From Macrostomum lignano (Eukaryota), in contig NIVC01001427.1 of the NCBI GenBank assembly GCA_002269645.1, forward strand, positions 160,761 through 224,760: a DNA stretch of 64,000 nt, read 5' to 3'. Under the pieces are notes generated by a model. The model was not told where the DNA came from, searched no databases, and saw nothing but the letters and a program-made list of their open reading frames with translations. A program made the position numbers and the translations under genes. Shown one piece after another: positions 4,651 to 56,481 of this stretch (the first letter of the stretch is position 1; each line of letters starts with the position of its first letter).

Positions 4651-7600
4651 GGCACAGCGACCTGAGCCAGCTGACCTTCGCCCTGGAGGGAGAGCGGCCG
4701 AAGACCATCCGCCATCGGATTTGGGTCCCGGCCGACAGTGCAATCAAGTCCGGGGAGCAGCTGCGGCAGCTCCTGCTCAAGCGGCACCCGGATCTCGACG
4801 CCAGTGGTCTTGTGTACCACAACACGGTCCGCAAGGGCACGACCGGGGCCACCGTCATCCTCGGCCTGACGGAGGGATGGGCCAAGCGGCTACCGCATGG
4901 CTCAAACCTCCACCTTGGTCTCCATCAACTGACCAACCTCCGCTGCGAGGAGGGCAAGGTGGAGACCAAGAACGATGGGCCGCACCCGGAGCTGGGGCCC
5001 AGGCTTCGCCGGCCAAGCGGCAGCAGCAACCCGATCCCGAGCCTAACAAGGCCATTCGCACTGCTGAGTCCGCCTCGCGCGGACGTAGACCCGCCCGCAG
5101 TAACCGGCGGTCCGGGCTAATCCAGCGCGCACTTGACGAAGCTCAGTCTCTGAGACTTCACCTCGAGCAGACTCGTGCTGCTCGCAAAAACACTGAAAGC
5201 CAGCCGAGGGAACTGGACGACGGCATGGCTCAGCCTTCCAACTGGTGGGATTACCACCAGGAGGACCTGCCGGCCGAGCTCAGACTCCCGACGGCGGGGC
5301 GCAAGGCGAAGGCAGCAGCCGTACCCCAGTCGCTGGGAGGAGGGCGGTGTAGCGAGGCTAGGTGACTCACCTGCCGTGGGCGCCGTGTCCGCCTCCGCGG
5401 CGGCTGGGGAGGCGGCTGAGCCTGAGCCAATGGAAATTGGCGACTCAACTCTCACCGATGAGGTTAAGAATGAGTTGCTTTTCTCCTCCCCTGGACAGTA
5501 GACATGACCGTCTCCCAGGGCATCCACTGCTTGCAGGTCAACCTGCAGCACAGCACTGCTGCTTCAGTCAACCTATTGAAGCAAACTGACCAATACGCAC
5601 CAGGGATTATCCTTATCCAGGAACCTTGGACGCTAAGGGGCAGCCCCCAGCATGTCCCCACCGGCTTCCAGTGTTTAACCGCTGGCACCCGGGAGGGAAA
5701 CCTGGCACCAAGATCTTGCATAATGGTGTCTAGCTCCATTAACGCATGGCTCAGATCGGACCTGTCTACCAGGGACATCTGTGTCATCCAGTCTGAAGAC
5801 ATACTCCCTGGGAGGACTAGCCTCATCGCCTCGGTCTACCTACCAGGCGACGGCGAGATGATCCCAGGAGAGCTTCAAGGCACCTTGCTTTGCTCCACCA
5901 GGAATTATGAGCTGCTTGTGGCAGGCGGCATCAACGCCCACCACACCCACTGGGGCAGTTCTGATATTAACCAGAGAGGTGAAGACTTCCTGGCTTATAT
6001 TGCTACTACAACCCTTGAGTTCTGTAACTCGGGTAGTACCCCTACCTTCAATAACGGACGCCGATCGGAGGTGCTGGATGCCACCCTCGCCACGCCCAGG
6101 CTCTTCCAGAGCACTAGGGAGTGGCGGGTGCTCTCTGAGGCGTCCCACTCCGATCACAAGCTCATCTCCTTCACGCTGGCCAGCGCCCGAAACGCAGGCC
6201 AGGATTACTGGAAACGAAATGCTAGGAATACCGATTGGACTGCCTTCAGGCTTGCCTTGGAGGAGACCTATCGATGCACTAGCTCTCCAGTCTCCATCAA
6301 CACCTGCGAGGAAGCAGATGAATTTGCGGCCGTACTTACGGACTCGCTTACTGCTGCCTTAGAAGCCTCATGCCCACTAAAGGCATATAAAGGCAAACAG
6401 TCGGCCCCATGGTGGAACCCGCAGCTTGGCGACCTCCGCCGCAGAGCCAAAAGGCTTCACCGTACGGCCCAAAAAACTAAAAATCCGGCCGACCAAACCG
6501 CCTACCTGAACTCAATCCACGAGTTCAAGAGGCAGGTTAGGAACGCCAAAACCAATAAGTGGCGCGAATACTGTGAGGAACTTGAGGGCTCCCGCCCCAC
6601 CTCCAGAATCGTTAATGTCCAAATGTCCAAAATGTCCAAACTCTCCTCAGTCAAGAGAGCCGACGGCTCGCTCACTGAGAACCCAGGAGAAACACTGGAA
6701 GCGATGCTAACAGCGTTTTTCCCGTGCGAGCCAGCCAGGCCCGACCCCCCTGATCACTCAGTGGGCGGTCACGTACTGGCTGACTTAATCATCACGGAGG
6801 ACCGCGTTGCTAAAGCTGTCTCCTTCTTCAAACCCTTCAAATCCCCAGGACCGGACGGCATTGTGCCAGCTTTCCTCCGAGAGGCGGTGAAATGCACCGG
6901 TTTTCTGCGGAACCTTTGCCAGCTCTTGAAAGCTTGCATTGTACTCGGCTTTGTTCCGAAACCCTGGACCGAGGCCAAGGTGGTTTTTATCGCCAAGCCG
7001 GGCCGACCGGACTACCGGTCCATTAAATCCTTCAGACCAATTAGCCTCACCTCACTGGTGAAGCTGTTAGAGAGACTGGTGCTCTGGCGCCTCCTCTCTG
7101 TGGAACTGAAGAACAAGCCGCTCAGTGGGAACCAGCACGCCTTTCGGGCAGGCCGGTCCACGGAGAGCGCGCTTCACGTTTTGGTTGACATGCTGGAGAA
7201 AGCCGTTCTTGGTAATGGCTACGCTCTCGCTGTCTTCCTCGACATTGTTGGAGCCTTCGATAATGTCCTCTTCGAGGCCTTTGACAGAGCTCTACGTGCT
7301 AGAGGAACCCACTCGCACCTCACCCGGTGGATCATGTATATGATCAGCCACCGCACTGCCACCGCACACCTGCTGGGCCACCAACGGACGGTAACCGTCT
7401 GCAAAGGCAGCCCCCAGGGCGGTGTCCTTTCTCCAGTTCTCTGGAACATGGTCATCGATGAGCTCCTTCAGGACAGCCATCTGGACCCCATCCTTAAGGT
7501 CGGTTACGCCGATGATGTCACAGCCGTAGCATCCGGTCCGTCACCCGAAACCCTCAGGGATCTTCTGCAAAACTTTATTCGCTCTGCTGAACAATGGGCG

Positions 7601-9301
7601 GACAGGTGCGGCCTCAGACTCTTCGAGACCAAAACTGTCGCGATCATGTTCACCAGCAGGGTCAACTGGCGTATTCGCCCACTAAAGCTTTACGGGGTGG
7701 AAATCCCATCCTGCAAGCAAACCAAGTGTCTCGGCGTTACGCTGGACCACCGGCTGAGCTGGTCCACCCACGTTCAGGCCAAAACCAAAAAAGCCCTCGC
7801 GATTCTTGTGCAGCTGCGCAGAGCCGTCGGCACCACCTCGGGCCTCACCCCGAAACGGCTCTGGTGGATCTACACCGCAATGGTCCGGCCGGCCGTCACT
7901 TACGCCGGCCTGGTCTGCACCAGCGCCTTGCAGATTAAAACCTGCCACGAAGCCCTCAAAAAGGTGCAGGGACTTGCGTGCCGCATGATCCTGAATGCCC
8001 CGCTCTCTGCTCCCTTTGACGGCCTCAACGCCTTTCTCTGCCTCCCGCCCCTGGACATCTTTGTCCGTCGCGAGGCTGCTAAAACCACCCGCCGGCTCAT
8101 CGAGGCTGGTGTTAACTTCAAGCCACAAAGAGCGATGGCGAAGCGCAAGCTATTGCCGCACTCTGACCTGTGCCTTAAAGTTCTGGAGGAGAGTGGGAGT
8201 GCGGCTGTCCTTTCGGACGCTAAGCCGCGCTCCCTCAATCTCTACCAACGCTTCAAGGTTACTATCCCCTCCAGGGAGAACGCCAACGACAGCTGGGCCC
8301 CTCAGGAGGTTCACTGCTTCACTGACGGATCCTCCAAAGACAGTTTATCCGGCTTTGGAGTCTGCATCCTTACCAACGGCCGCGTGATCGCCACTCACGC
8401 CCAACACACTGGCAGACTCTCCAGCGTCTTCCAGAACGAAGTCCTTGCCATCAGCTCCTGTGCAGCTGAGCTTCAAGGACTTCAAGGACAGAAGAATTCT
8501 ATTCCACTCTGACAGTCAGGCCGCTTTGCAGGCCCTGTGTCACACCACTACGAATTCTCGAACAGTCCACGACTGTATCGGGCAGCTCAACAAGCTGGCT
8601 CGGAGGAAAACCGTCCGGCTCACGTGTATCCCAGGACACGCTGGGTTCAAAGGTAACGAGCTCGCCGACTCCCTCGCCAAGGCGGGTAGTTCTGGCTCGC
8701 TCCTTGGCCCCGTGCCCCTGGCCCCCATCCCTGCCACGGTCATTAATCGTGAGATTAATGCTGGGCGGACATCCTGCACTTAAGCAGATGGGTTGGCATT
8801 TCCAACTGCCGCCAGTCCCGTGCTGCAGTGCCCAATCCGTCCCTCAAGCTGCGGAAAATTCTTTTGAATCAAATTCGAAAAGATATCCGCGCTCTCACTA
8901 TGACCTTCACAGGTCACGGTTGCTTTGCCAGGCACTGCTTCCTCCGAAGTATTCGCCGGAGCGAACTCTGCCCCTTCTGCAGCCTTGAGAACGAAGATGC
9001 CATGCACTTCATCTGCTACTGCCCGGCCTTCAACCGAGACCGGCTCAATCACCTCGGGCCCAACCCGTCCCTGGACGACGTTTGCCGGCCCGAGAACATC
9101 CCACGGCTCATCCGGTTCCTCCGGGCTACCAAACGAGCCTCCGTCTTCCCCACCGAAGACAACGCTGCAGACAGAACCGGCAGACCTCCCTGACCGGCCC
9201 CGCGCCCTAGCCTTTGCAGGTCTTTCAGGGATTAGCGGAATGGGCGACGCTCGCCTCCTCGCTGCGTCTTCGGACCGCCCTGCAGCTAAGTCAAGTAAGT
9301 C
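4651..9301 (+). mobile_element. 5'-truncated non-LTR retrotransposon (LOA/R1-type LINE with RNase H)
   Basis: Frameshifted ORF1 remnant from 4651 (RIWVP...LLLKRHPDL...VILGL, DUF4780-like by my reading), ORF2 from 5504, 3' tail GCTAAGTCAAGTAAGTC. Flanked by AATGTCTTCT (4641-4650) and AATCTCTTCT (9302-9311), a 10-bp TSD with one mismatch. Confidence 0.92.
5504..9193 (+). pseudogene. LINE ORF2: APE endonuclease - reverse transcriptase - RNase H - C-terminal Cys/His finger, frameshifted
   Basis: QVNLQH, LIQEPW and SDH (APE); PQGGVLSP and YADD (RT); FTDGS, QNEVLAI, HSDSQAAL, IPGHAGFKGNELAD (RNase H); CPFCSLENEDAMHFICYCP. Frameshifts near 8480 and 8765. Confidence 0.9.
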
Positions 9302-9592
9302 AATCTCTTCTTAGTATTGTATTAATTTATCTACTACTATTCATTAGCGAATTTTAAAGTTATTCAATATGTACGCTTAAAATTTGTTTTACAGTATCTT
9401 TCATAGAAGTATTGTATATTATTTAAAGACTGTTCAATCGCGATTTTGCGCTCATCGTCTCTTGTGTTTTTCGGGTGGTCCGCTGCTTTGTGCCCGTCTG
9501 CAGTAGTTTACCATCAACAATTTAACGGCGATAAAACTAAAAGTGTATCCTATCTGTTCAAATATATAGAATAAGACAAGTCAACTCGATTC

Positions 9593-9642
9593 GCCGTAAG
9601 ACTGTCTCTTACTACGAAGACTCAATTTATTATTGTGCATAG
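9593..9642 (+). other. Spliced-leader-like sequence (degenerate SL exon copy)
   Basis: GCCGTAAGACTGTCTCTTACTACGAAGACTCAATTTATT closely matches the Macrostomum lignano SL as I remember it (CCGTAAAGACGGTCTCTTACTGCGAAGACTCAATTTATTGCATG). The 3' end diverges and lacks the ATG|GT junction. The reference is recalled, not looked up. Confidence 0.6.
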
Positions 9643-9877
9643 CCGTCAGTCTCGAACTCAGAAGGGTCTCGTCACAGCTAGATTTAAAGTTGCTTATAAC
9701 CTCTAGCTAAGTTTTGTCTGTAAGTCAAATAAGTTTGAAACTCTGAGCCCCGATTATTTACGATGCACTTTACTGCATACTGAATTTCACTACTAACTAT
9801 ACTGTATCGACGGTTAAGGCAGGCTGCATTTTTAGCTTGGCTGAAGCGGCTCATGCACCGATAAACTGTGAAACACT

Positions 9878-10555
9878 TGTCTATGGCCCGCAAGCCGAGT
9901 TTAGAATGTCTATGGCCTGACGACCAGTACAGTCAGTCGTAGGAGGGTCAGCTTAAAACAGATCTTAACAAGTGCGACAGAAGCCAGCTGCTCAAATCCC
10001 AAAGTGTCTCTGAATTGAAACTGATTTTTCCGAGTCTTACTTGAACAAACAAAACAATGGCTCAGCTCCAGCTCCTTATGCTGCTCATTGCCATCATCGC
10101 GTTGCTAAGTGAGTAATCATTTCTTTGAATTTCATAACTTCTCATTCAATCATCAGCCTCATTGTCTAACGCGCGATTTGTCCGTCTGCAGTTCCAGGTC
10201 TCGCCGAAGGCTGCTTTGAGCGCAGCATCAACAGACTGGATCAGGACGAGGATTTCAGAAAGAAGCGATCAGTATGAGCGAGCCGTGTCTGCGGTCCATT
10301 GACTATGAAGACGATTGGTGAATTTCAATTGTTTTTTCGAGTTCTTTTTTTGTTCCTTTAAGCTTCCTGTTTAGCCAGTCTATTATTCTTTCAAATAAAA
10401 TATTGAATATTAGAAAGTTGAGTCAAAAATGGTTGGCCATAAGCGCATATGTTTCTTTGACGCGTTTGAGCTACAAGTGTGGTAAATGTGTGTTTTCAAT
10501 TTATTGGCTGTCAAGACGGATGAACTAATCCATTGCATATAATATTCCTTCATCT
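9878..10555 (+). repeat. Local duplication, copy 2
   Basis: Paralogous to 2818-3460; the LINE lies between the two copies. Confidence 0.9.
10057..10277 (+). CDS. Small secreted peptide precursor, 45 aa, copy 2
   Basis: Exons 10057-10108 and 10192-10277. MAQLQLLMLLIAIIALLIPGLAEGCFERSINRLDQDEDFRKKRSV*; differs from copy 1 only at residue 2 (V/A). Confidence 0.7.
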
Positions 10556-45288: not shown

Positions 45289-45714
45289 CTACCAGCCGTC
45301 AATGCAGCCCAAATTGCCAGCGTGCACGTCGTTCCTGGCGTTCTTATGCAGCACTTTGCCCTCCTCGTCAACCACCACCAGGCAGGGGATGCCGCTGACG
45401 CCGTACTGCTCGGAGAGGCCCTTGCGCTCCTCGGCGTCGAAGGGCACCACATAGTAGTCTCCGTGCAACTCTTTCATGTAGCTCCACATGGAGGCCTCGT
45501 CGTGGTCGCACGACACGAACACGCACTCCACGGCCTTGTTGGCAGCCTTGGCCTCGGCGTAGAACTTGGCCAGCACCGGGCTGAAGCTGCGGCAAGGCGG
45601 GCACCAGTGCGCGGAGAAGTACAGCATGATCTTCTTTCCCTGTAGCAGATCTTTGCCGGAGAATTCCTTCTTCTTCTTGTTCAGCAGCTTCAGGTCGATG
45701 GGCTTGATCGGCAT
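45289..45714 (-). CDS. Nucleoredoxin/tryparedoxin-like single-domain thioredoxin (141 aa)
   Basis: LYFSAHWCPPCRSF, ECVFVSCDHDE, YGVSGIPCLVVVD; acceptor-like CAG one base before the ATG. Confidence 0.92.
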   Translation of the reverse strand: MPIKPIDLKLLNKKKKEFSGKDLLQGKKIMLYFSAHWCPPCRSFSPVLAKFYAEAKAANKAVECVFVSCDHDEASMWSYMKELHGDYYVVPFDAEERKGLSEQYGVSGIPCLVVVDEEGKVLHKNARNDVHAGNLGCIDGW

Positions 45715-46229
45715 CCTGTTTGAGCGGATTTCCAAGCTTTTCAGGGAGGCAGGTCAGGAGCAGGAGAGATGCCAAGGCGGCTGTGTCCAGTCCCGACAGT
45801 TCAACAATATATTATGCCAGACAAGCGAGGGAAGAGTTGCCATTGGTAACAAACTGCCGAGAGGGGTATGCAGGCTGTACGCCAAATGTACATTTGGACT
45901 GATGGGGGAGAGGGGAGGGACAGAGAATGCAGAGTACGTACTGCAGTTTTCACGCACTCTGGTGTCGAGTGGCCTGCGCGCACTGGTCGGTCCAGTAGGG
46001 GGGGGGGGGTAGAATGAGCTGCAGTCTCATGGGAAGAGAATTTTTTCTCGTATCCCAAGAGAGAATCAAATCGATATTGCCAAAGCACGTCGCAATGCAC
46101 TGCAATACATGATTTTAACAAATGGAAAATTCCACAAAGCGACGTGGCTAGATCGTGTCGCCATCATGAGTCACTGAACAGGGATTTTTCAATTGCATGC
46201 GTTTGTGCAAAATGTTGCATGTACTTTTA

Positions 46230-47750: not shown

Positions 47751-50700
47751 TCACCTGCCCCTGCCACCGCCGCCTTTCCGCTTGCCGCCCTTCCGGTTCG
47801 TCAGCTTGTTCCGCTCGCGAGTTATGCGCGCCTTCACAATCTGCTCCACGCTTTTGCGCTCCGACTGCTGCTGCCCACCTTTCTTTCCTGGGCGGCCGCC
47901 TGGCGTCGCTGCTGCTGCCGCCGCGGCCGCTGTAGGACCGTGCCGCTTTCGCTGCAGACCCAGGACGCGCATTCCGCCACGGCCACCGCCGCCTCCCCGA
48001 CCTTCTCCGTCGTTGCCGGCGCCGTCATCGTCAGCGCCGTCCTCGCCGCCGCCTCCCAGCGCCTCCGCATCGCCGCCGCCGATATCGGGGTTCCGCTTGC
48101 GCCACTTGGCGTAGCGGTCGGTCTTGTAGGAGGCCGGCACCAGCTGGCCGCTCTCCGTCCGCACCATCAGCCGCTTGGCCGCCGACGGGCCGCCGCCGGC
48201 CGCCGAATCTGCCGACACGAACTTCTTCCGCTTCCGGTCCCAGATCCGACCGCCGGCGCCCGGCGCCCGTCCGCCGCGGCGCATCTGGTCGGTCTCATCA
48301 GCCAGGATGTCCATACTGTGCCGCTGCAGGTCCTGCGCCAAGCCGCGCTCCGTCGCCGCCGTGGCCTCGTCGCGGGTGTACGGCATGAAGAAGCCGCCGG
48401 CGCCGCTGGCTTTGATGTCGCCGCTGTCGGCGCCGTCTGCGTTGGATCCCGTTGCGACCGCCGCCGCCTCCCGTTTGCCTCCGCCGCGCAGTGCGGCATC
48501 AAGCCAGCCGGCCGGCCGCTTCTGAGTCTTGGCCTGCAGATACAAAAATGCGATCAATACTACTCAAAACAGAAAGTAAGTAGTGTAGAAAAGATTTGAA
48601 ATACTGATAAACACCGCGGCCCTCACCTTTTCAATGACTCGACGATTCTTTTGCCGGAATTTTTGCATCACCTCGGCAACAGCGGCCGGCGCGTTCTTCG
48701 TCTCGAACACCGTGGCCCGGGCTCGGTAAGCTCTGCGGGGCGGGCTCTGCTTCGTTAATAGTGCCGGACACTCACTCTGACACTGACGGACACTCACCCC
48801 ACTGGCCGGACGCTCACTCTGACACTGGCCGGACACTCGCCATGACACTGCCGGACACTCACCCAGACACTGGCCTGACACTCACCCAGACACTGGCCGC
48901 ACACTCACCCAGACACTGGCCGGACACTAACCCAGACACTGGCCGGACACTCACCCAGACACTGGCCGGACACTTACCCAGACACTGGCCGCACACTCAC
49001 CCAGACACTGGCCGGAAACTCACCCAGACACTGGCCGGACACTCACCCAGACACTGGCCGGAAACTCACCCAGACACTGGCCGGACACTCACCCAGACAC
49101 TGGCCGGACACTAACCCAGACACTGGCCGGACACTCACCCAGACACTGGCCGGACACTAACCCAGACACTGGCCGGACACTCACCCAGACACTAGCCGGA
49201 AACTCACCCAGACACTGGCCGGACACTCACCCAGACACTGGCCGGACACTCACCCAGACACTGGCCGGACACTCACCCAGACACTAGCCGGAAACTCACC
49301 CAGACACTGGCCGGACACTCACCCAGACACTGGCCGGACACTCACCCAGACACTGGCCGGACACTCACCCAGACACTGGCCGGAAACTCACCCAGACACT
49401 GGCCGGACACTCACCCAGACACTGGCCGGACACTAACCCAGACACTGGCCGGACACTAACCCAGACACTGGCCGGACACTCACCCAGACACTAGCCGGAA
49501 ACTCACCCAGACACTGGCCGGACACTCACCCAGACACTGGCCGGACACTCACCCAGACACTGGCCGGACACTCACCCAGACACTAGCCGGAAACTCACCC
49601 AGACACTGGCCGGACACTCACCCAGACACTGGCCGGACACTCACCCAGACACTGGCCGGACACTCACCCAGACACTGGCCGGACACTCACCCAGACACTG
49701 GCCGGACACTCACCCAGACACTGGCCGGACACTCACCCCGACACCGTTCTGAAAGCCCGCAGCTCACCTGATCTGCTTAAGCACATCATCCTTGGCGCTG
49801 GTTAGCTCCGCAAACATCGGGTGCGGCTGCAGGTCGAGCTGGCCGGTCCGTCGGGCCTCCTTGCACTTGGCCACCGCCTGCCGGCTGGCGCCCGGCCTTG
49901 ACCGGACATAGTGCTCCATGGCGCGCTTGGCGCAATCCAGCTGGGCGCGCAAATCGGCGCTGATGTCGTGTCGATGCCGGCACCAATCAGCGAATTCTTC
50001 CACGGCGGCGGCGGGCACGCAGCCGACCAGGTCGCCGGGTTCGTCCGGCTGAACCGGCGGTTCGCCCGGCGCCGCGCGGAGGTAGCGAAGGCGCCTGGCG
50101 CCGAGGAACAACTCAAGGTCGAACAGGTAGGCCAGCTCGTCCGGCGCCAGCAGCGACACGGCGCGGCCCGGCCGGCCGGCTCGAGCAACCCGGCCAACCC
50201 GGTGGACGAAGAGCTTCTCCCTGGGCGGGAAGTGAAAATTCACGACGTTGTTGAGGCGCGGCAGGTCGAGGCCGCGGGCGGCCAGGTCGGTGGTGACAAG
50301 GACGTGCCGCTCGCCGCACCGGAAGTTGGCAGCGTGAATCCGACGGGCCGCCGGGTCCAGGGAGGAGTACAGGTAGGTCACCGAGATGCTGGCGTCCTGG
50401 GATAGCACCTGGGGGGTGCGGGGTGTTGAGCTGGTGCTTGAGCACTTTTATCATAGGCAAATGTGAGACGAAATTGATCAATAAAAAGCCTGAGAGATCC
50501 TTGCTAATTGCCAGCACATTAAAAATCCCAGATCGCGAACCTGATACAGCCACTCCACGTGGTGCTTAGTGGCCACGAACACAATGGTGAGCTCCTGGCC
50601 CTTCAGCGCCGTGTGCAGCAGGTGCAGCAGCACCGGCAGTTTGTCTTCGTCGCGGCAAAGCAGGAAGCTGGCGGTCAGCTGGTCGGACAGCTTGGCGTCC

Positions 50701-52245
50701 AGGTCCAGACGGACCAGCAGGGGGTCGGACAGGCCGGCCCTGGCGAACTCGGCCACCGACTGCGGCAGGGTGGCGCTGAACAGCAGCGTCTGGCGCTGGG
50801 TTGGCAGCCGGCTGAGCAGCAGCTGCAGCTGCTCCTGGAAGCCCAGCTCGAATAGGCGGTCGCATTCGTCCAGCACCAGGATCTCCACCTTGCTCAGCCT
50901 GCGGTCGGGCGGGGGCGGGATTTGAGTTGGGACTTGTAGTGGGATTCCTACCTTAGGGATTGGGATTCTCACCATAGGGATTTGGATTCTTACCTTAGGG
51001 ATTGGGATTCTTTCCTTAGGGATTGGGATTCTCACCATAGGGATTGGGATTCTTACCTTAGGGATTGGGATTCTTACCTTAGGGATTGGGATTCTTACCT
51101 TAGGGATTGGGATTCTTACCCGATGGATTGGGATTCTCACCATAAGAATTGGGATTCTTACCATAGGGATTAGGATTCTACAATAGGGTTTGGGATTCTT
51201 AACTTAGGGATCAAGATTTTACAATAGGGATTCGGATTCTTTCTCCCCTTAGAGATAGGGATTCTTACTATAGGCATTGGGATTCTTACCTTAGGGATTG
51301 GGATTCTTTCCTTAGGGATTGGGATTCTCACCATAGGGATTGGGATTCTTACCTTAGGGATTGGGATTCTTACCTTAGGGATTGGGATTCTCACCATAGG
51401 GATTGGGATTCTTACCTTAGGGATTGGGATTCTTACCCGATGGATTGGGATTCTCACCATAAGAATTGGTATTCTTACCATAGGGATTAGGATTCTACAA
51501 TAGGGTTTGGGATTCTTAACTTAGGGATCAAGATTCTACAATAGGGATTCGGATTCTTTCTCCCCTTAGAGATAGGGATTCTTACTATAGGCATTGGGAT
51601 TCTTAACTTAGGGATTAGGATTCTACACTAGGAATTGGGATTCTCCCCTTAGAGATAGGGATTCTTACTATAGGAGTTGGGATTCCTAAATTACTTTAGA
51701 CATAAACAAAACCTGAGCAGGTCTCACTTGGCGTCCATCTCAGTGAGCAGGTGCAGCAGCCGGCCCGGACAGGCCACAACAATGTCCGGGTTGCTGTGCA
51801 GGGCGCTGAACTGCCGCTCCATGCTGTCGCCGCCCAGCACCAGAGCCACGGTGAGGTCGGTGAAGCGGCCCAGGGCCCGGCAGAAGTCCAGAGTCTGCAG
51901 CGCGAGCTCCCGGGTCGGGCTGAGCACCAGAGCTCGGGCGCCGTTGCACTGGTGAGCCCGCAGGCGCTCCAGCAGCGGCACCAGGAAGGCGGCGGTCTTG
52001 CCAGAGCCGGTGCGCGCCATGGCGACGACATCCCTGCCGGCCAGGATGTGCGGCATGGTCTTGCGCTGGATCGGGGTGGGCACCCGGTAGCCTTTGCGCA
52101 CGATGCCTTTGTACACTGGCGCCGACAGGCCCAGCGACTGGAAGCCACCGGACTTCCGCTGCTTCCGGTTCCGGCTGGCGATGGCCGAGCGGGACTCCGC
52201 CCGCTCCGCCGACAAGGCGGCGTCCTCAACGACTGCCGGGGTCGA
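47751..52245 (-). CDS. DDX54: ATP-dependent RNA helicase DDX54/DBP10 (no genomic start codon found)
   Basis: In-frame exons 51728-52245, 50541-50898, 49768-50408, 48627-48732, 47751-48533 (801 codons plus stop). [65 protein letters not shown]-terminal [20 protein letters not shown]. Confidence 0.95.
48765..49740. repeat. Intronic minisatellite, 23-bp unit (CACTCACCCAGACACTGGCCGGA)
   Basis: About 40 units in DDX54 intron 3. Confidence 0.95.
50945..51685. repeat. Intronic minisatellite, 21-bp unit (GGGATTGGGATTCTTACCTTA)
   Basis: DDX54 intron 1. Confidence 0.92.
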
Positions 52246-52284
52246 CTGCGGGCGGCGGTAAAGTGCATCGATAACCCAGCAGGG

Positions 52285-52555
52285 AGTTGGGGTAATCCAG
52301 TAGTGGGTTAGAGTAATCCGCAAGGGGGTTGGGGTAATCCGGAAGGGGGTTGGGGTAATCTAGTGGGGGGTTGGGGTAATCCAGTGGGTGGGTTGGGGTA
52401 ATCCGGAAGGGGGTTGGGGTAATCCGCAAGGGGGTTGGGGTAATCCACAAGGGGGTTGGGGTAATCTAGTGGGTGGGTTGGGGTAATCCGGTAGGGGGTT
52501 GGGGTAATCCGCAAGGGGGTTGGGGTAATCCGGCAGGGGGTTGGGGTAATCCGGA
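52285..52555. repeat. Minisatellite, 21-bp unit (GGGGGTTGGGGTAATCCGGAA), between NBS1 and DDX54
   Basis: Tandem repeats, G-rich on the plus strand. Confidence 0.92.
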
Positions 52556-52906
52556 AGAGATTGAGAATTGGGGCACTAGGAACAATCCTAATGGCACGCA
52601 AGACCATCAGTGGTTAATGAAACCACTAAAGGATTAAGACAGCAATAAAAAGTCCAATTAAAGCAGCAAACAGCTGACTAAACAGCAACGGTAACTCTTG
52701 AATAAGACCTAAGATTCACGGGTTTATTGAATTACTCGCAAAGCATACATTAGTACAAAAATAGACCAAGTAAAAATGCAGCTGCGCTTATAAATTGAAG
52801 CGAAAAACAGACGAGCAAAAATGTAAATTGCAAAAGAAACAAAAATGCAGGGGGCTGACAGACCCCCTTAAAAATAATATAAATACAGATAGAGAGCGGC
52901 AGGTGG

Positions 52907-54834
52907 TCACGTGAACAGATCGTCAAACAGACGGTCAGCCTGGGAGGCGCTGTCGCCAGCATTAGAGGCCTGCCCCTGAAATCCGACACGACCTCCCCGA
53001 CCGGTGGACTTCGCCTTCCGCCGCGACTCGCCGATTCCGTCATTGGCGTCGTCCTCGGCCTCCAGCAAGTCGAAGACGCTGCCGTGGCCGCCGCCGTCGC
53101 TGCCACTGCCGGCAATCTTTCTGGTGTCATCGGTGCTGACGGAGCCGCCGCTGATGCCGCCGCCGCTGTCGCGGGCAACAAGCCGAGTGATGAGCGGCGA
53201 TCTGGCGGCCGACGAGCCCGACGCCTGCTGGCTGACCGACCGAGCAGCAGCCGACTTGGCAACGAAGCGCTTGAAGTTCGGAACCACCCGGCCGCGCCAC
53301 ACGGCCTGGTTGGGCCCAGCGGGGGAGGCGGCGGGCTGCGGCGTTAGCGGCTTCGGCTTGGCGGAGATCAGCGACCGCTTGTTGACGCGCATGTAGCGCG
53401 GCTCCTCGGCGGCCAGGGGGAAATCGCTGAGGGTCAGCTCGGCGGCAGGTGGCTTGCGCAGCGACTGCTTGTCTGGCGGCGCTGGACCGATGTTTGTCTT
53501 CACCTCGGATAGTGGCGCCAGCAGTGGCGCCGGCTTTGGCGCCGGCTGCTCCGGCGAGTCGGCGGCTGTTTTGCTGAAGTACTGCAGCATGCTGGCCTGC
53601 CGCTTGGCCTGCGGAGCAGCGGCGTCCGACGGTTCGCCTTTGCGCCGCCGGCTGCCGGCCAGGCCGACCGACTCGTTGGCTGGCTTCTTCACCGGTGACG
53701 GCGACTGGCTGCACAGGCGCTTCGGTGCCGGCCTCGGGGCCGCCGGTTCCACAGCGGGGCTGCTGCCATCGTCCGCGAATAGCGACAGAATGCCGCGGCC
53801 AGCGACTCCGCTTTCGGTTCCGCTTCCGGCTTCGTTTTTGACTTCCCCTTTGTCGCAGCCGTCGGCCGCACTGGCCGATGCCGACGGAGCTTCGGACAGT
53901 CGTGGCCGGCGCCTGTCCGGCTGGACGCATTCGGCGTCGACCTCGCCAGCAATAGCTATGGAAGAACGCTTGCGCGGTTGCTGCTGTGGCTGCTGCTGCT
54001 GCTCGGAGGCCTGGGTGGAGGTGTCCAGCAGGCTGGGGTCGCAGGGGGCGCACGGGTTGCAGACCAGGTCGGTGCGGCAGGCCAGCACGGCCCAGCAGAT
54101 CTCCAGCTCTAGCACTGGCCGGCGGCTCGCAGACCTCAGGAGGCTGAAGACCCGCCCGGTCCAGTCCGAGTCCGCGGGGCCCGCCGAGGCCGACCGGACA
54201 ACCAGGACGGTGTCATCCGCCAAATCGGCCAGCTGCAGGCCGACGGCGAGCAGCGCTGACTCCGAGTGGGCGGCCAAGGCGACTCCTCCGGCCGCCTGGA
54301 CGATGTCGCCGAACCGGCCGAGGCCGTCCGGACGAAGGAAACAGCAGCGCCGGCCGGACAGCAGGCGGCGTCGCTCTGGCTGGGGTCCAAAGTCGACGCT
54401 GTCGGCCAGCGGGCCGGACAGCAGGGCGGCCTCGGACACGGCCGGCCGAAATCGCTCGGGAAGTGGGGGCGGTTGGCCGGCCTGGACAGCCGCGGCCAGG
54501 CGGGTGAGAAAATCGGGCAGCACGGGAGCGGCCAGGTGCAGCAGGCCGAGCACCAGCTTGGCCGTCACGGTCAGCCGCGGCATCACCAGCAGGTCGGCGC
54601 CGTCTCTGGCGTCGTCCACCACCCGGCCGCCGAGCCGCTGCAGCGTCGTGGTGGCCGTCTGCCGGCTGGCCTCGCTTAGCGCTGAGAAGCAGACTCGGAG
54701 GCCTTGGCGCCTGAGGCGGCAGACCGCGCCCAGGCTAGGGTCCGAGTCCCCGAATTCCAGCTGATCGCCCGGCCTGGCGGGAAAGTGGCGAATGCGGCGA
54801 AATCAATGACAGACAGACAGACAGACAGACAGTC

Positions 54835-54879
<45 letters not shown>

Positions 54880-54884
54880 CCCGA

Positions 54885-54981
<97 letters not shown>

Positions 54982-54999
54982 AAGACAGACAGACAGACC

Positions 55000-55035
<36 letters not shown>

Positions 55036-55040
55036 CCCGA

Positions 55041-55115
<75 letters not shown>

Positions 55116-56328
55116 GCCGGACAGACAGCAGCTGTAACAGACAGACAGCCAGACAGACAGACAGACAGCCGGACAGACAGCAGCTGTGACAGACAGACAT
55201 CCAGACAGACAGACAGACAGACAGCCGGACAGACAGCAGCTGTGACAGACAGACAGACAGACAGCCAGACAGGCAGGCAGACAGCCGGACAGACAGACAG
55301 CCGGACAGACAGCAGCTGAGACAGACAGACAGCAGCTGAGACAGACAGACAGCCAGACAGGCAGGCAGACAGCAGCTGAGACAGACAGACAGCCAGACAG
55401 CCAGACAGACGGACAGACAGCCAGACAGCCGGACAGACAGCAGCTGTAACAGACAGACAGCCAGACAGACAGACAGACAGCCGGACAGACAGCAGCTGTG
55501 ACAGACAGACAGACAGACAGCCAGACAGGCAGGCAGACAGCCGGACAGACAAACAGCCGGACAGACAGACAGCCGGACAGACAGCAGCTGAGACAGACAG
55601 ACAGCCAGACAGCCAGACAGACGGACAGACAGCCAGACAGACAGACAGACAGACAGACAGCCGGACAGACAGCAGCTGAGACAGACAGACAGCAGCTGAG
55701 ACAGACAGACAGCCAGACAGGCAGGCAGACAGCAGCTGAGACAGACAGACAGCCAGACAGCCAGACAGACGGACAGACAGCCAGACAGCCGGACAGACAG
55801 CAGCTGTAACAGACAGACAGCCAGACAGACAGACAGACAGCCAGACAGACAGCAGCTGTAACAGACAGACAGACAGCCAGACAGGCAGGCAGACAGCCGG
55901 ACAGACAGACAGCCGGACAGACAGACAGCCGGACAGACAGCAGCTGAGACAGACAGACAGCCAGACAGCCAGACAGACGGACAGACAGCCAGACAGACAG
56001 ACAGGCAGACAGCCGGACAAACAGCAGCTGAGACAGACCCATAAAACAGTTCACAGACTTACCGAACGGTGACCCCGGCGGGCCCGGCAGGCGCGGCATC
56101 GCAGCCGTTGACGCGGGTGCCGTACCGGGAGGCCAGGTCAGCCAGTATGAGCAAGCCCGGCTCCGGGCCCGGCCGGAGCTCGGCGTGCACCCGGCTGACG
56201 GACTTGCAGTCCAGGTGCAGCTGCACTTTGCTCTTCAGGCGGCCGATATGGGCCCGGCTACCCGGCTGGTCCATGGGCGGCAGGTAGAGGCACCGGTCCG
56301 ACTCCTGCAGTTCCAGGTACCACAGCAT
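52907..56328 (-). CDS. NBN: Nibrin (NBS1): FHA - BRCT - BRCT - MRE11/ATM-binding tail
   Basis: Exons 56063-56328 and 52907-54773. FHA IGR..KSVSRVHAEL..DLASRYGTRVN..GDQLEFG; BRCT CFSAL..LQRLGG..LVMPRLTVTAKLVLGL; LLSGRRCCFL..DIVQAAGG; PNFKRF; ADRLFDDLF. Confidence 0.88.
54808..56038. repeat. (GACA)n microsatellite with higher-order variants
   Basis: Fills the NBS1 intron. Confidence 0.97.
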
Positions 56329-56481
56329 GGCCGGTGGAATGCTGAAGAGTGTGGCAGGTTGCTTCAAGTTAGTGCGGAGGACTACCATTGGCTAAACCGA
56401 TGGGCACAGCATCCGGGGATTAAAAGATGAAGGACGGGTGGCCGAATCAGATTGAAATATGCAGATTTTAGAGAAAGGGAT

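Follow-up and report, generated by a model that had tools for sequence, protein, structure and literature searches.

The window analysed here, a 64,000-nucleotide (nt) stretch of the genome of Macrostomum lignano, a flatworm that is free-living, carries on its minus strand a gene for the DEAD-box helicase DDX54, which follows a gene for an NBS1-like protein (FHA/NIBRIN_BRCT_II) on the same strand. The window locus, designated L003, is base-for-base identical to contig NIVC01001427.1 of assembly Mlig_3_7, and two other genomic copies, L001 and L002, were available for comparison. The features of the locus are listed in Table 1. Our analysis of its sequence and deposited annotation indicates that M. 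lignano DDX54 very probably has no initiation codon in the genome and takes its AUG from the trans-spliced leader (SL).

Table 1. Features of the DDX54 locus, in window coordinates
Feature	Position	Strand	Remarks
NBS1-like gene (BOX15_Mlig017032g1), stop codon TGA	52907..52909	(-)	L003 position 9339 = window 52907
Poly(A) signal AATAAA of the NBS1-like gene	52723..52728	(-)	kept in all three copies
Upstream ATG with GTCTTG right after it	52605..52607	(-)	out of frame if unspliced
Outron / intergenic spacer, NBS1 poly(A) signal to DDX54 acceptor	52246..52722	(-)	477 nt
21-nt minisatellite, sense unit CCGGATTACCCCAACCCCCTW, non-coding	52272..52557	(-)	Tandem Repeats Finder (TRF), 286 nt, 13 copies
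Nearest upstream in-frame stop, TAG	52360..52362	(-)	inside the repeat
Second out-of-frame ATG	52266..52268	(-)	23 nt before the acceptor
3' splice acceptor TTTACCGCCGCCCGCAG, putative SL trans-splice site	52246..52262	(-)	identical in L001, L002 and L003
DDX54 exon 1	51728..52245	(-)	518 nt, STPAVV...TEMDAK, donor GTGAGA
Q-motif region of DDX54	52066..52143	(-)	F35 ... PTPIQ60
First genomic in-frame ATG, codon 64	52054..52056	(-)	downstream of the Q motif, context RKT-M-PHIL
DDX54 exon 2	50541..50898	(-)	model identical to GenBank PAA68056.1
DDX54 exon 3	49768..50408	(-)	carries Helicase_C
DDX54 exon 4	48627..48732	(-)	106 nt
DDX54 exon 5	47751..48533	(-)	DBP10CT domain, basic tail, TGA stop

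The DDX54 gene was modelled as five exons running from 52245 to 47751 on the minus strand, with 801 codons, or 802 amino acids (aa) once a methionine from the SL is added. Pfam searches of the product returned DEAD (E = 1.1e-50, residues 57-223), Helicase_C (5.6e-23) and DBP10CT (NUC160; 3.2e-15), and the features that define the nucleolar helicase DDX54/Dbp10 are all present: a DEAD core with its Q motif, Helicase_C and DBP10CT. Human DDX54 in pre-60S particles (8fkt) was the top match among solved structures, with E = 9e-67 for exon 1 alone. With the full-length protein as query, metazoan DDX54 proteins showed 40-58% identity to the M. lignano protein and the M. lignano entries themselves were retrieved, whereas a query with the protein of exon 1 only yielded just short fragments, none of them from Macrostomum and none above 72% identity. 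In the DDX54 alignment, the segment GGFQ...PTPIQ is invariant. A four-exon model was also considered and rejected, as it contains a frameshift at the junction between exon 3 and the last exon, which is removed by the 106-nt exon at 48732-48627; because this exon restores the reading frame, there is no need to invoke a pseudogene or an error in the assembly.

At the gene's 5' end, the acceptor ...ctttaccgccgcccgcag closes with the G at 52246, and TCG ACC CCG GCA opens at 52245 of the minus strand. A scan of the helicase frame on this strand found no ATG between the TAG at 52362 and exon 1, and the first in-frame ATG in the genome is codon 64. This agrees with the original prediction, which had been made from the sequence alone and placed exon 1 after an acceptor at 52246 with no in-frame methionine before the Q motif. 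Met64 lies 4 residues past Q60 of PTPIQ, within the Pfam DEAD match that begins at residue 57, and since it comes after the invariant Q motif (GGFQ...PTPIQ60), a start at this position would truncate the helicase core. The chance of 63 Met-free codons, estimated as ~0.98^63, is about 0.3, and such a run is not unusual alone; the weight lies in the combination of a phase-0 acceptor, an upstream in-frame stop and the lack of any start before an indispensable motif.

The position of the acceptor was further explored by scanning all AG dinucleotides between 52725 and 52100: an ATG was placed before the sequence that follows each of them, and the helicase frame was checked. Upstream of the coding sequence (CDS), the helicase frame proved open only after the AG at 52246 and after a TAG followed by ATT within the minisatellite. 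The CAG at 52233, considered as an alternative acceptor, is out of the helicase frame. In its C-rich ...GCAG style, the acceptor at 52246 resembles the internal cis acceptors of DDX54 (...cccgaccgcag, ...caccccccag, ...cccgccccgcag).

The published M. lignano SL is CGGTCTCTTACTGCGAAGACTCAATTTATTGCATG, with the final stretch ...AATTTATTGCATG, and ends in ...TTGCATG (PMC8629364), in keeping with the earlier statement that flatworm SLs end in AUG. We propose that the DDX54 pre-mRNA is SL trans-spliced at the CAG that ends at 52246. The 35-nt SL ends in AUG, and the resulting junction, ...TTATTGCATG joined to TCGACCCCGGCA with 52245 as the first genomic base, would place that AUG in frame with TCG. 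Joining GCATG to TCG ACC CCG gives MSTPAVV..., which continues in frame to the stop of an 802-aa protein; translation of the junction and the five-exon model thus both reproduce the M-S-T-P start and the 802 aa that had been predicted. In the modelled mature mRNA, the SL AUG would precede every other AUG, lying 32 nt from the cap, and would start the 802-aa protein; the next AUG is that of Met64, 189 nt downstream. A transcript without the SL would have its helicase frame shut upstream by the TAG at 52362; codon 64 would then offer the first usable AUG, at the cost of the Q motif. That DDX54 is essential, and that it would be translatable only after trans-splicing, are inferences of the original prediction. 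When the window was searched for the SL or for a gene of the SL RNA, only a chance match with 3 mismatches was returned.

The deposited annotation of all three copies points in the same direction. The three DDX54 proteins in GenBank are flagged as partial at the 5' end and lack an initiator methionine in 3/3 cases: PAA68056.1 (BOX15_Mlig020098g1, from L003, the window) and PAA86580.1 (BOX15_Mlig020098g2, from L001) begin STPAVV, and PAA85936.1 (BOX15_Mlig020098g3, from L002) begins TPAVV, the suffixes g1, g2 and g3 numbering the genomic copies. In g1 and g2, the deposited CDS opens with the base directly after ...cgcag; in g3 it opens 3 nt further on, an offset that may reflect read trimming or the codon_start convention. 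A UniProt entry, A0A1I8HKH6, begins QSTPAVV. In the M. lignano annotation, the 5' ends of genes were set at peaks of SL-containing RNA-seq reads (TBONE) and open reading frames (ORFs) were assigned via TransDecoder (PMC5730564). A transcript model with a more upstream 5' end would run into the TAG at 52362 and receive a "complete" ORF from Met64, so that a partial ORF beginning right after the AG implies a model that starts there. By this inference, the deposited annotation speaks strongly, though indirectly, for an SL site at 52246. Reads carrying the SL would be expected at this position, as would the use of the SL AUG in vivo.

Comparison of the copies also bears on the integrity of the gene. 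The copies show 8 differences within exon 1, of which 8/8 fall on third codon positions of the helicase frame and are synonymous, the first of them at codon 26, while the whole DDX54 CDS differs at 17-21 nt, with only ~3 amino-acid changes and one extra Ala. This synonymous bias indicates that purifying selection acts on the DDX54 copies, none of which is a pseudogene. With an overall divergence of just 0.3-1% and zero differences within codons 1-25, the copies say nothing about the N-terminus itself.

The N-termini of orthologues provide a separate line of comparison. With the added methionine, 33 residues precede GGFQ in M. lignano, and 29-32 do so in Clonorchis, Taenia, Rodentolepis, Heterobilharzia, Anoplocephala and Schistocephalus; this match in length indicates that only the methionine is missing from M. 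lignano DDX54. Together with the Met-less 5'-partial copies and the frame match of the SL, these N-termini lend support to the SL-AUG interpretation first put forward in the original prediction. In Clonorchis, Taenia and Heterobilharzia, the DDX54 genes have their own genomic ATG at the homologous position, unlike the M. lignano gene, and the ATG-less state is therefore not general to flatworm DDX54. One could go further and suppose that loss of the ATG is derived in Macrostomum and fixed in three copies, that this helicase of 60S biogenesis has become strictly SL-dependent, that ribosome production in neoblasts is coupled to the supply of SL ribonucleoprotein (RNP), and that DDX54 is perhaps one of many uncounted obligate SL-AUG genes, but we consider this extended scenario unlikely. 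The enrichment of trans-spliced genes in neoblasts would provide a context for the coupling to the SL RNP, if it is true.

Several observations weigh against initiation at an SL AUG joined at 52246. Trans-acceptors of M. lignano are enriched for [T/C]TNCAG (PMC8629364), a motif to which the acceptor's CCGCAG conforms only in part, and the SL AUG sits in a weak Kozak context, with U at -3 and U at +4. The CDS of g3 begins at ACC, 3 nt past the acceptor (L002 9998-10003). CDSs that are 5'-partial also occur at 5' ends that are not acceptors, as in the Redoxin neighbour, and the label "partial" alone is no proof; trans-splicing at 52246 is itself deduced from the way in which the deposited annotation was built. 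In addition, the NBS1-like gene and DDX54 bear different transcriptional-unit prefixes, Mlig017032 and Mlig020098.

If the SL did not provide the start codon, a cis-spliced 5' micro-exon might do so. Two candidates could be joined to the acceptor at 52246, the ATG at 52607-52605 (donor GTCTTG) and a 5-codon exon encoding MYALR at 52750-52736 (donor GTAATT). Either join would keep the phase without bringing in a stop, and the ATG that is followed by GT is the sole candidate whose splicing would also yield M-S-T-P. The original prediction had set aside the ATG at 52607 as out of frame and without a convincing donor; the first half of this holds only for unspliced RNA, while the donor is indeed poor. 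The motif GT[G/A]AG is enriched at M. lignano donors (122,399/187,627 regions; PMC8629364), and neither GTCTTG nor GTAATT matches it, although DDX54 itself has one non-consensus donor, GTTCGC in intron 2. The MYALR exon would moreover fall within the 3' untranslated region of NBS1, upstream of its AATAAA, and an upstream exon appears in 0/3 of the RNA-seq-based gene models, all three of which are 5'-partial. Both candidates lie in unique flanks kept in all three copies, but this conservation is uninformative on function because the copies are only 0.3-1% diverged. Such a micro-exon is the least unlikely of the alternatives to a start codon brought in by the SL, and even so very unlikely.

The spacer that precedes the acceptor had been described as about 480 nt long with a 270-nt repeat, and our measurements are close to these values (Table 1), with the NBS1 AATAAA lying 476 nt upstream of the acceptor; after subtraction of the tandem repeat, the spacer amounts to ~190 nt, or 375 nt when counted from the stop codon of the NBS1-like gene. 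The earlier count of a single out-of-frame ATG in the spacer, at 52607, has to be corrected, as there are two, at 52607 and 52268. In unspliced RNA, the ATG at 52268 would open a junk ORF of ~190 codons through exon 1. The same ATG enters an alternative frame (+2 relative to the helicase) that is open for 203 codons, at 52307-51699 of the minus strand, and spans all of exon 1; this frame is probably a by-product of the GC content of about 68%. An Rfam search over 51600-53000 gave nothing credible.

The minisatellite array in the outron differs considerably among the copies, with 13 units in L003, 22 in L002 (9501-9971) and about 30 in L001 (about 9360-9975). The distance from the NBS1 stop to TCG varies correspondingly, being 661 nt in L003, 998 in L001 and 850 in L002, and the repeat copy number accounts for these differences. 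The nearest in-frame stop upstream of TCG lies at 117 nt in L003, 669 nt in L001 and 138 nt in L002. The spacers do not differ in length by multiples of 3, and relative to TCG the distal ATGs change frame from copy to copy. Since both the frame of the repeat and the distance to the stop vary, read-through of the repeat cannot be a conserved coding solution. A second minisatellite, in intron 1 of DDX54 (50940-51685), has the same period of 21 nt as the outron array, with different units, and satellites also fill intron 3 and other introns.

These properties of the spacer bear on the possibility that DDX54 mRNA carries no SL and is translated from a non-AUG codon in the open stretch at 52359-52246, or from Met64. 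Upstream of TCG, 38 codons are open, ATT, ATC and TTG among them, and Met64 is the first genomic in-frame AUG. However, the open stretch consists of minisatellite whose frame and length vary among the copies, and a scanning ribosome would first meet the two out-of-frame AUGs at 52607 and 52268. A start at Met64 would remove the Q motif and the beginning of the DEAD domain, while the N-termini of the orthologues fit a start at the acceptor. Initiation of this kind is less probable still than a micro-exon.

The NBS1-like gene upstream raises the further question of whether DDX54 is made as a fusion with it or by read-through from it, as in the UniProt models A0A1I8IU19 and A0A1I8FG00. These two deposited models link NBS1 to STPAVV, one via the acceptor at 52246 and the other through the repeat, and the sharing of acceptors between cis- and trans-splicing has been reported in flatworms. 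Against a fusion, the NBS1-like gene has its own stop codon, an AATAAA signal and a complete RNA-seq-based model of 710 aa, and the read-through model requires translation of a minisatellite that ranges from 13 to about 30 copies. Both chimeric models (window about 52246-56330) come from ab initio prediction on an older assembly rich in errors, in which the DDX54 gene could be closed only by joining it to NBS1, and A0A1I8FG00 contains frameshifted stretches; each model probably arose as an artefact when a start was forced onto an ATG-less gene. A joint NBS1-DDX54 product is the least probable of the explanations considered.

The 5' end of the NBS1-like gene itself shows an apparent SL-type acceptor, cactcTTCAG followed by CATTCCACCGGCC-ATG, with the G at 56342 (minus strand, 56342-56326), and the gene appears to begin at this TTCAG because the partial CDS in L002 starts 1 nt after it. 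An SL AUG joined here would be out of frame and would open an upstream ORF of 28 codons overlapping the gene's own ATG at 56328, the opposite of the situation in the neighbouring DDX54.

It is plausible that DDX54 is the downstream member of an operon-like pair with the NBS1-like gene. The two genes lie on the same strand, the repeat-adjusted spacer is ~190 nt, and DDX54 would be trans-spliced; operon distances in M. lignano have a mode of about 100 bp, with a calling threshold of 1 kb (PMC8629364). The arrangement is like that of described M. lignano operons (Wudarski et al. 2017, PMC5730564; Ustyantsev & Berezikov 2021, PMC8629364) in its same-strand upstream gene, CAG acceptor and repeat-inflated spacer, and unlike them in that the NBS1-like gene and DDX54 share no annotated transcriptional unit. 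The annotation contains no polycistronic precursor for the pair, as the differing locus-tag prefixes indicate; this negative result is weak, since units often break in repeat-rich spacers (PMC8629364).

The use of the SL as a source of the initiation codon has a clear precedent. Cheng et al. (2006) showed that the 3'-terminal AUG of a flatworm SL serves as initiator methionine, and more than 40 Schistosoma mansoni cDNAs were reported to need the SL AUG. In Echinococcus granulosus, 143 of 187 SL-bearing clusters were, by prediction, full-length with the SL ATG, whose use is, for 10 of 15 orthologues, conserved across Neodermata (PMC3510090), and SL-AUG initiation has been restated for Hymenolepis and S. 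mansoni. For Macrostomum, the final ATG of the SL has been labelled "translation start codon" (PMC10468722), while neither PMC5730564 nor PMC8629364 discusses the SL AUG in this role, and the searchable papers and supplements make no mention of Macrostomum DDX54 or Mlig020098.

M. lignano DDX54 resembles the known flatworm SL-AUG ORFs in that the SL ends in AUG, the acceptor is in phase 0 and the SL AUG would be the first in the mature mRNA, and also in that no in-frame AUG of the genome would leave the conserved N-terminus intact. It differs from the neodermatan cases in that M. lignano is a free-living macrostomorph and in that its use of the SL AUG is deduced from the genome rather than from cDNA or translation assays. 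The gene is thus a clean new example of a mechanism established since 2006 and not a new phenomenon, and it adds little biologically. It does offer a checkable case, a conserved housekeeping gene whose ORF would be completed only by the SL, in a free-living flatworm that is tractable by transgenesis. The "partial" DDX54 entries in GenBank are probably complete apart from the SL-encoded methionine, and pipelines that annotate Macrostomum genes should supplement phase-0 acceptors with the SL AUG.

Other features of the window were also noted. An ankyrin-repeat gene at ~59552 of the minus strand (L002 1719; L003 2708) could be a second case of an in-frame SL AUG: its partial CDS in L002 lies directly after ctgTTGCAG, beginning with CAGCCGCAC (QPHSQHH...). 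The annotations of this gene are inconsistent, as the window copy is annotated in another frame 14 nt downstream and L001 has just a 145-aa model. An intact thioredoxin-like/Redoxin ORF is present at 45292-45753 of the minus strand (Thioredoxin_8, 8.5e-27); its homologue is called in L001 and L002, and no gene is listed at that place in L003. On the plus strand, an open frame of 1012 codons at 5474-8509, with Exo_endo_phos_2 and RVT_1 domains, represents an apparently intact copy of a non-LTR (long terminal repeat) retrotransposon.

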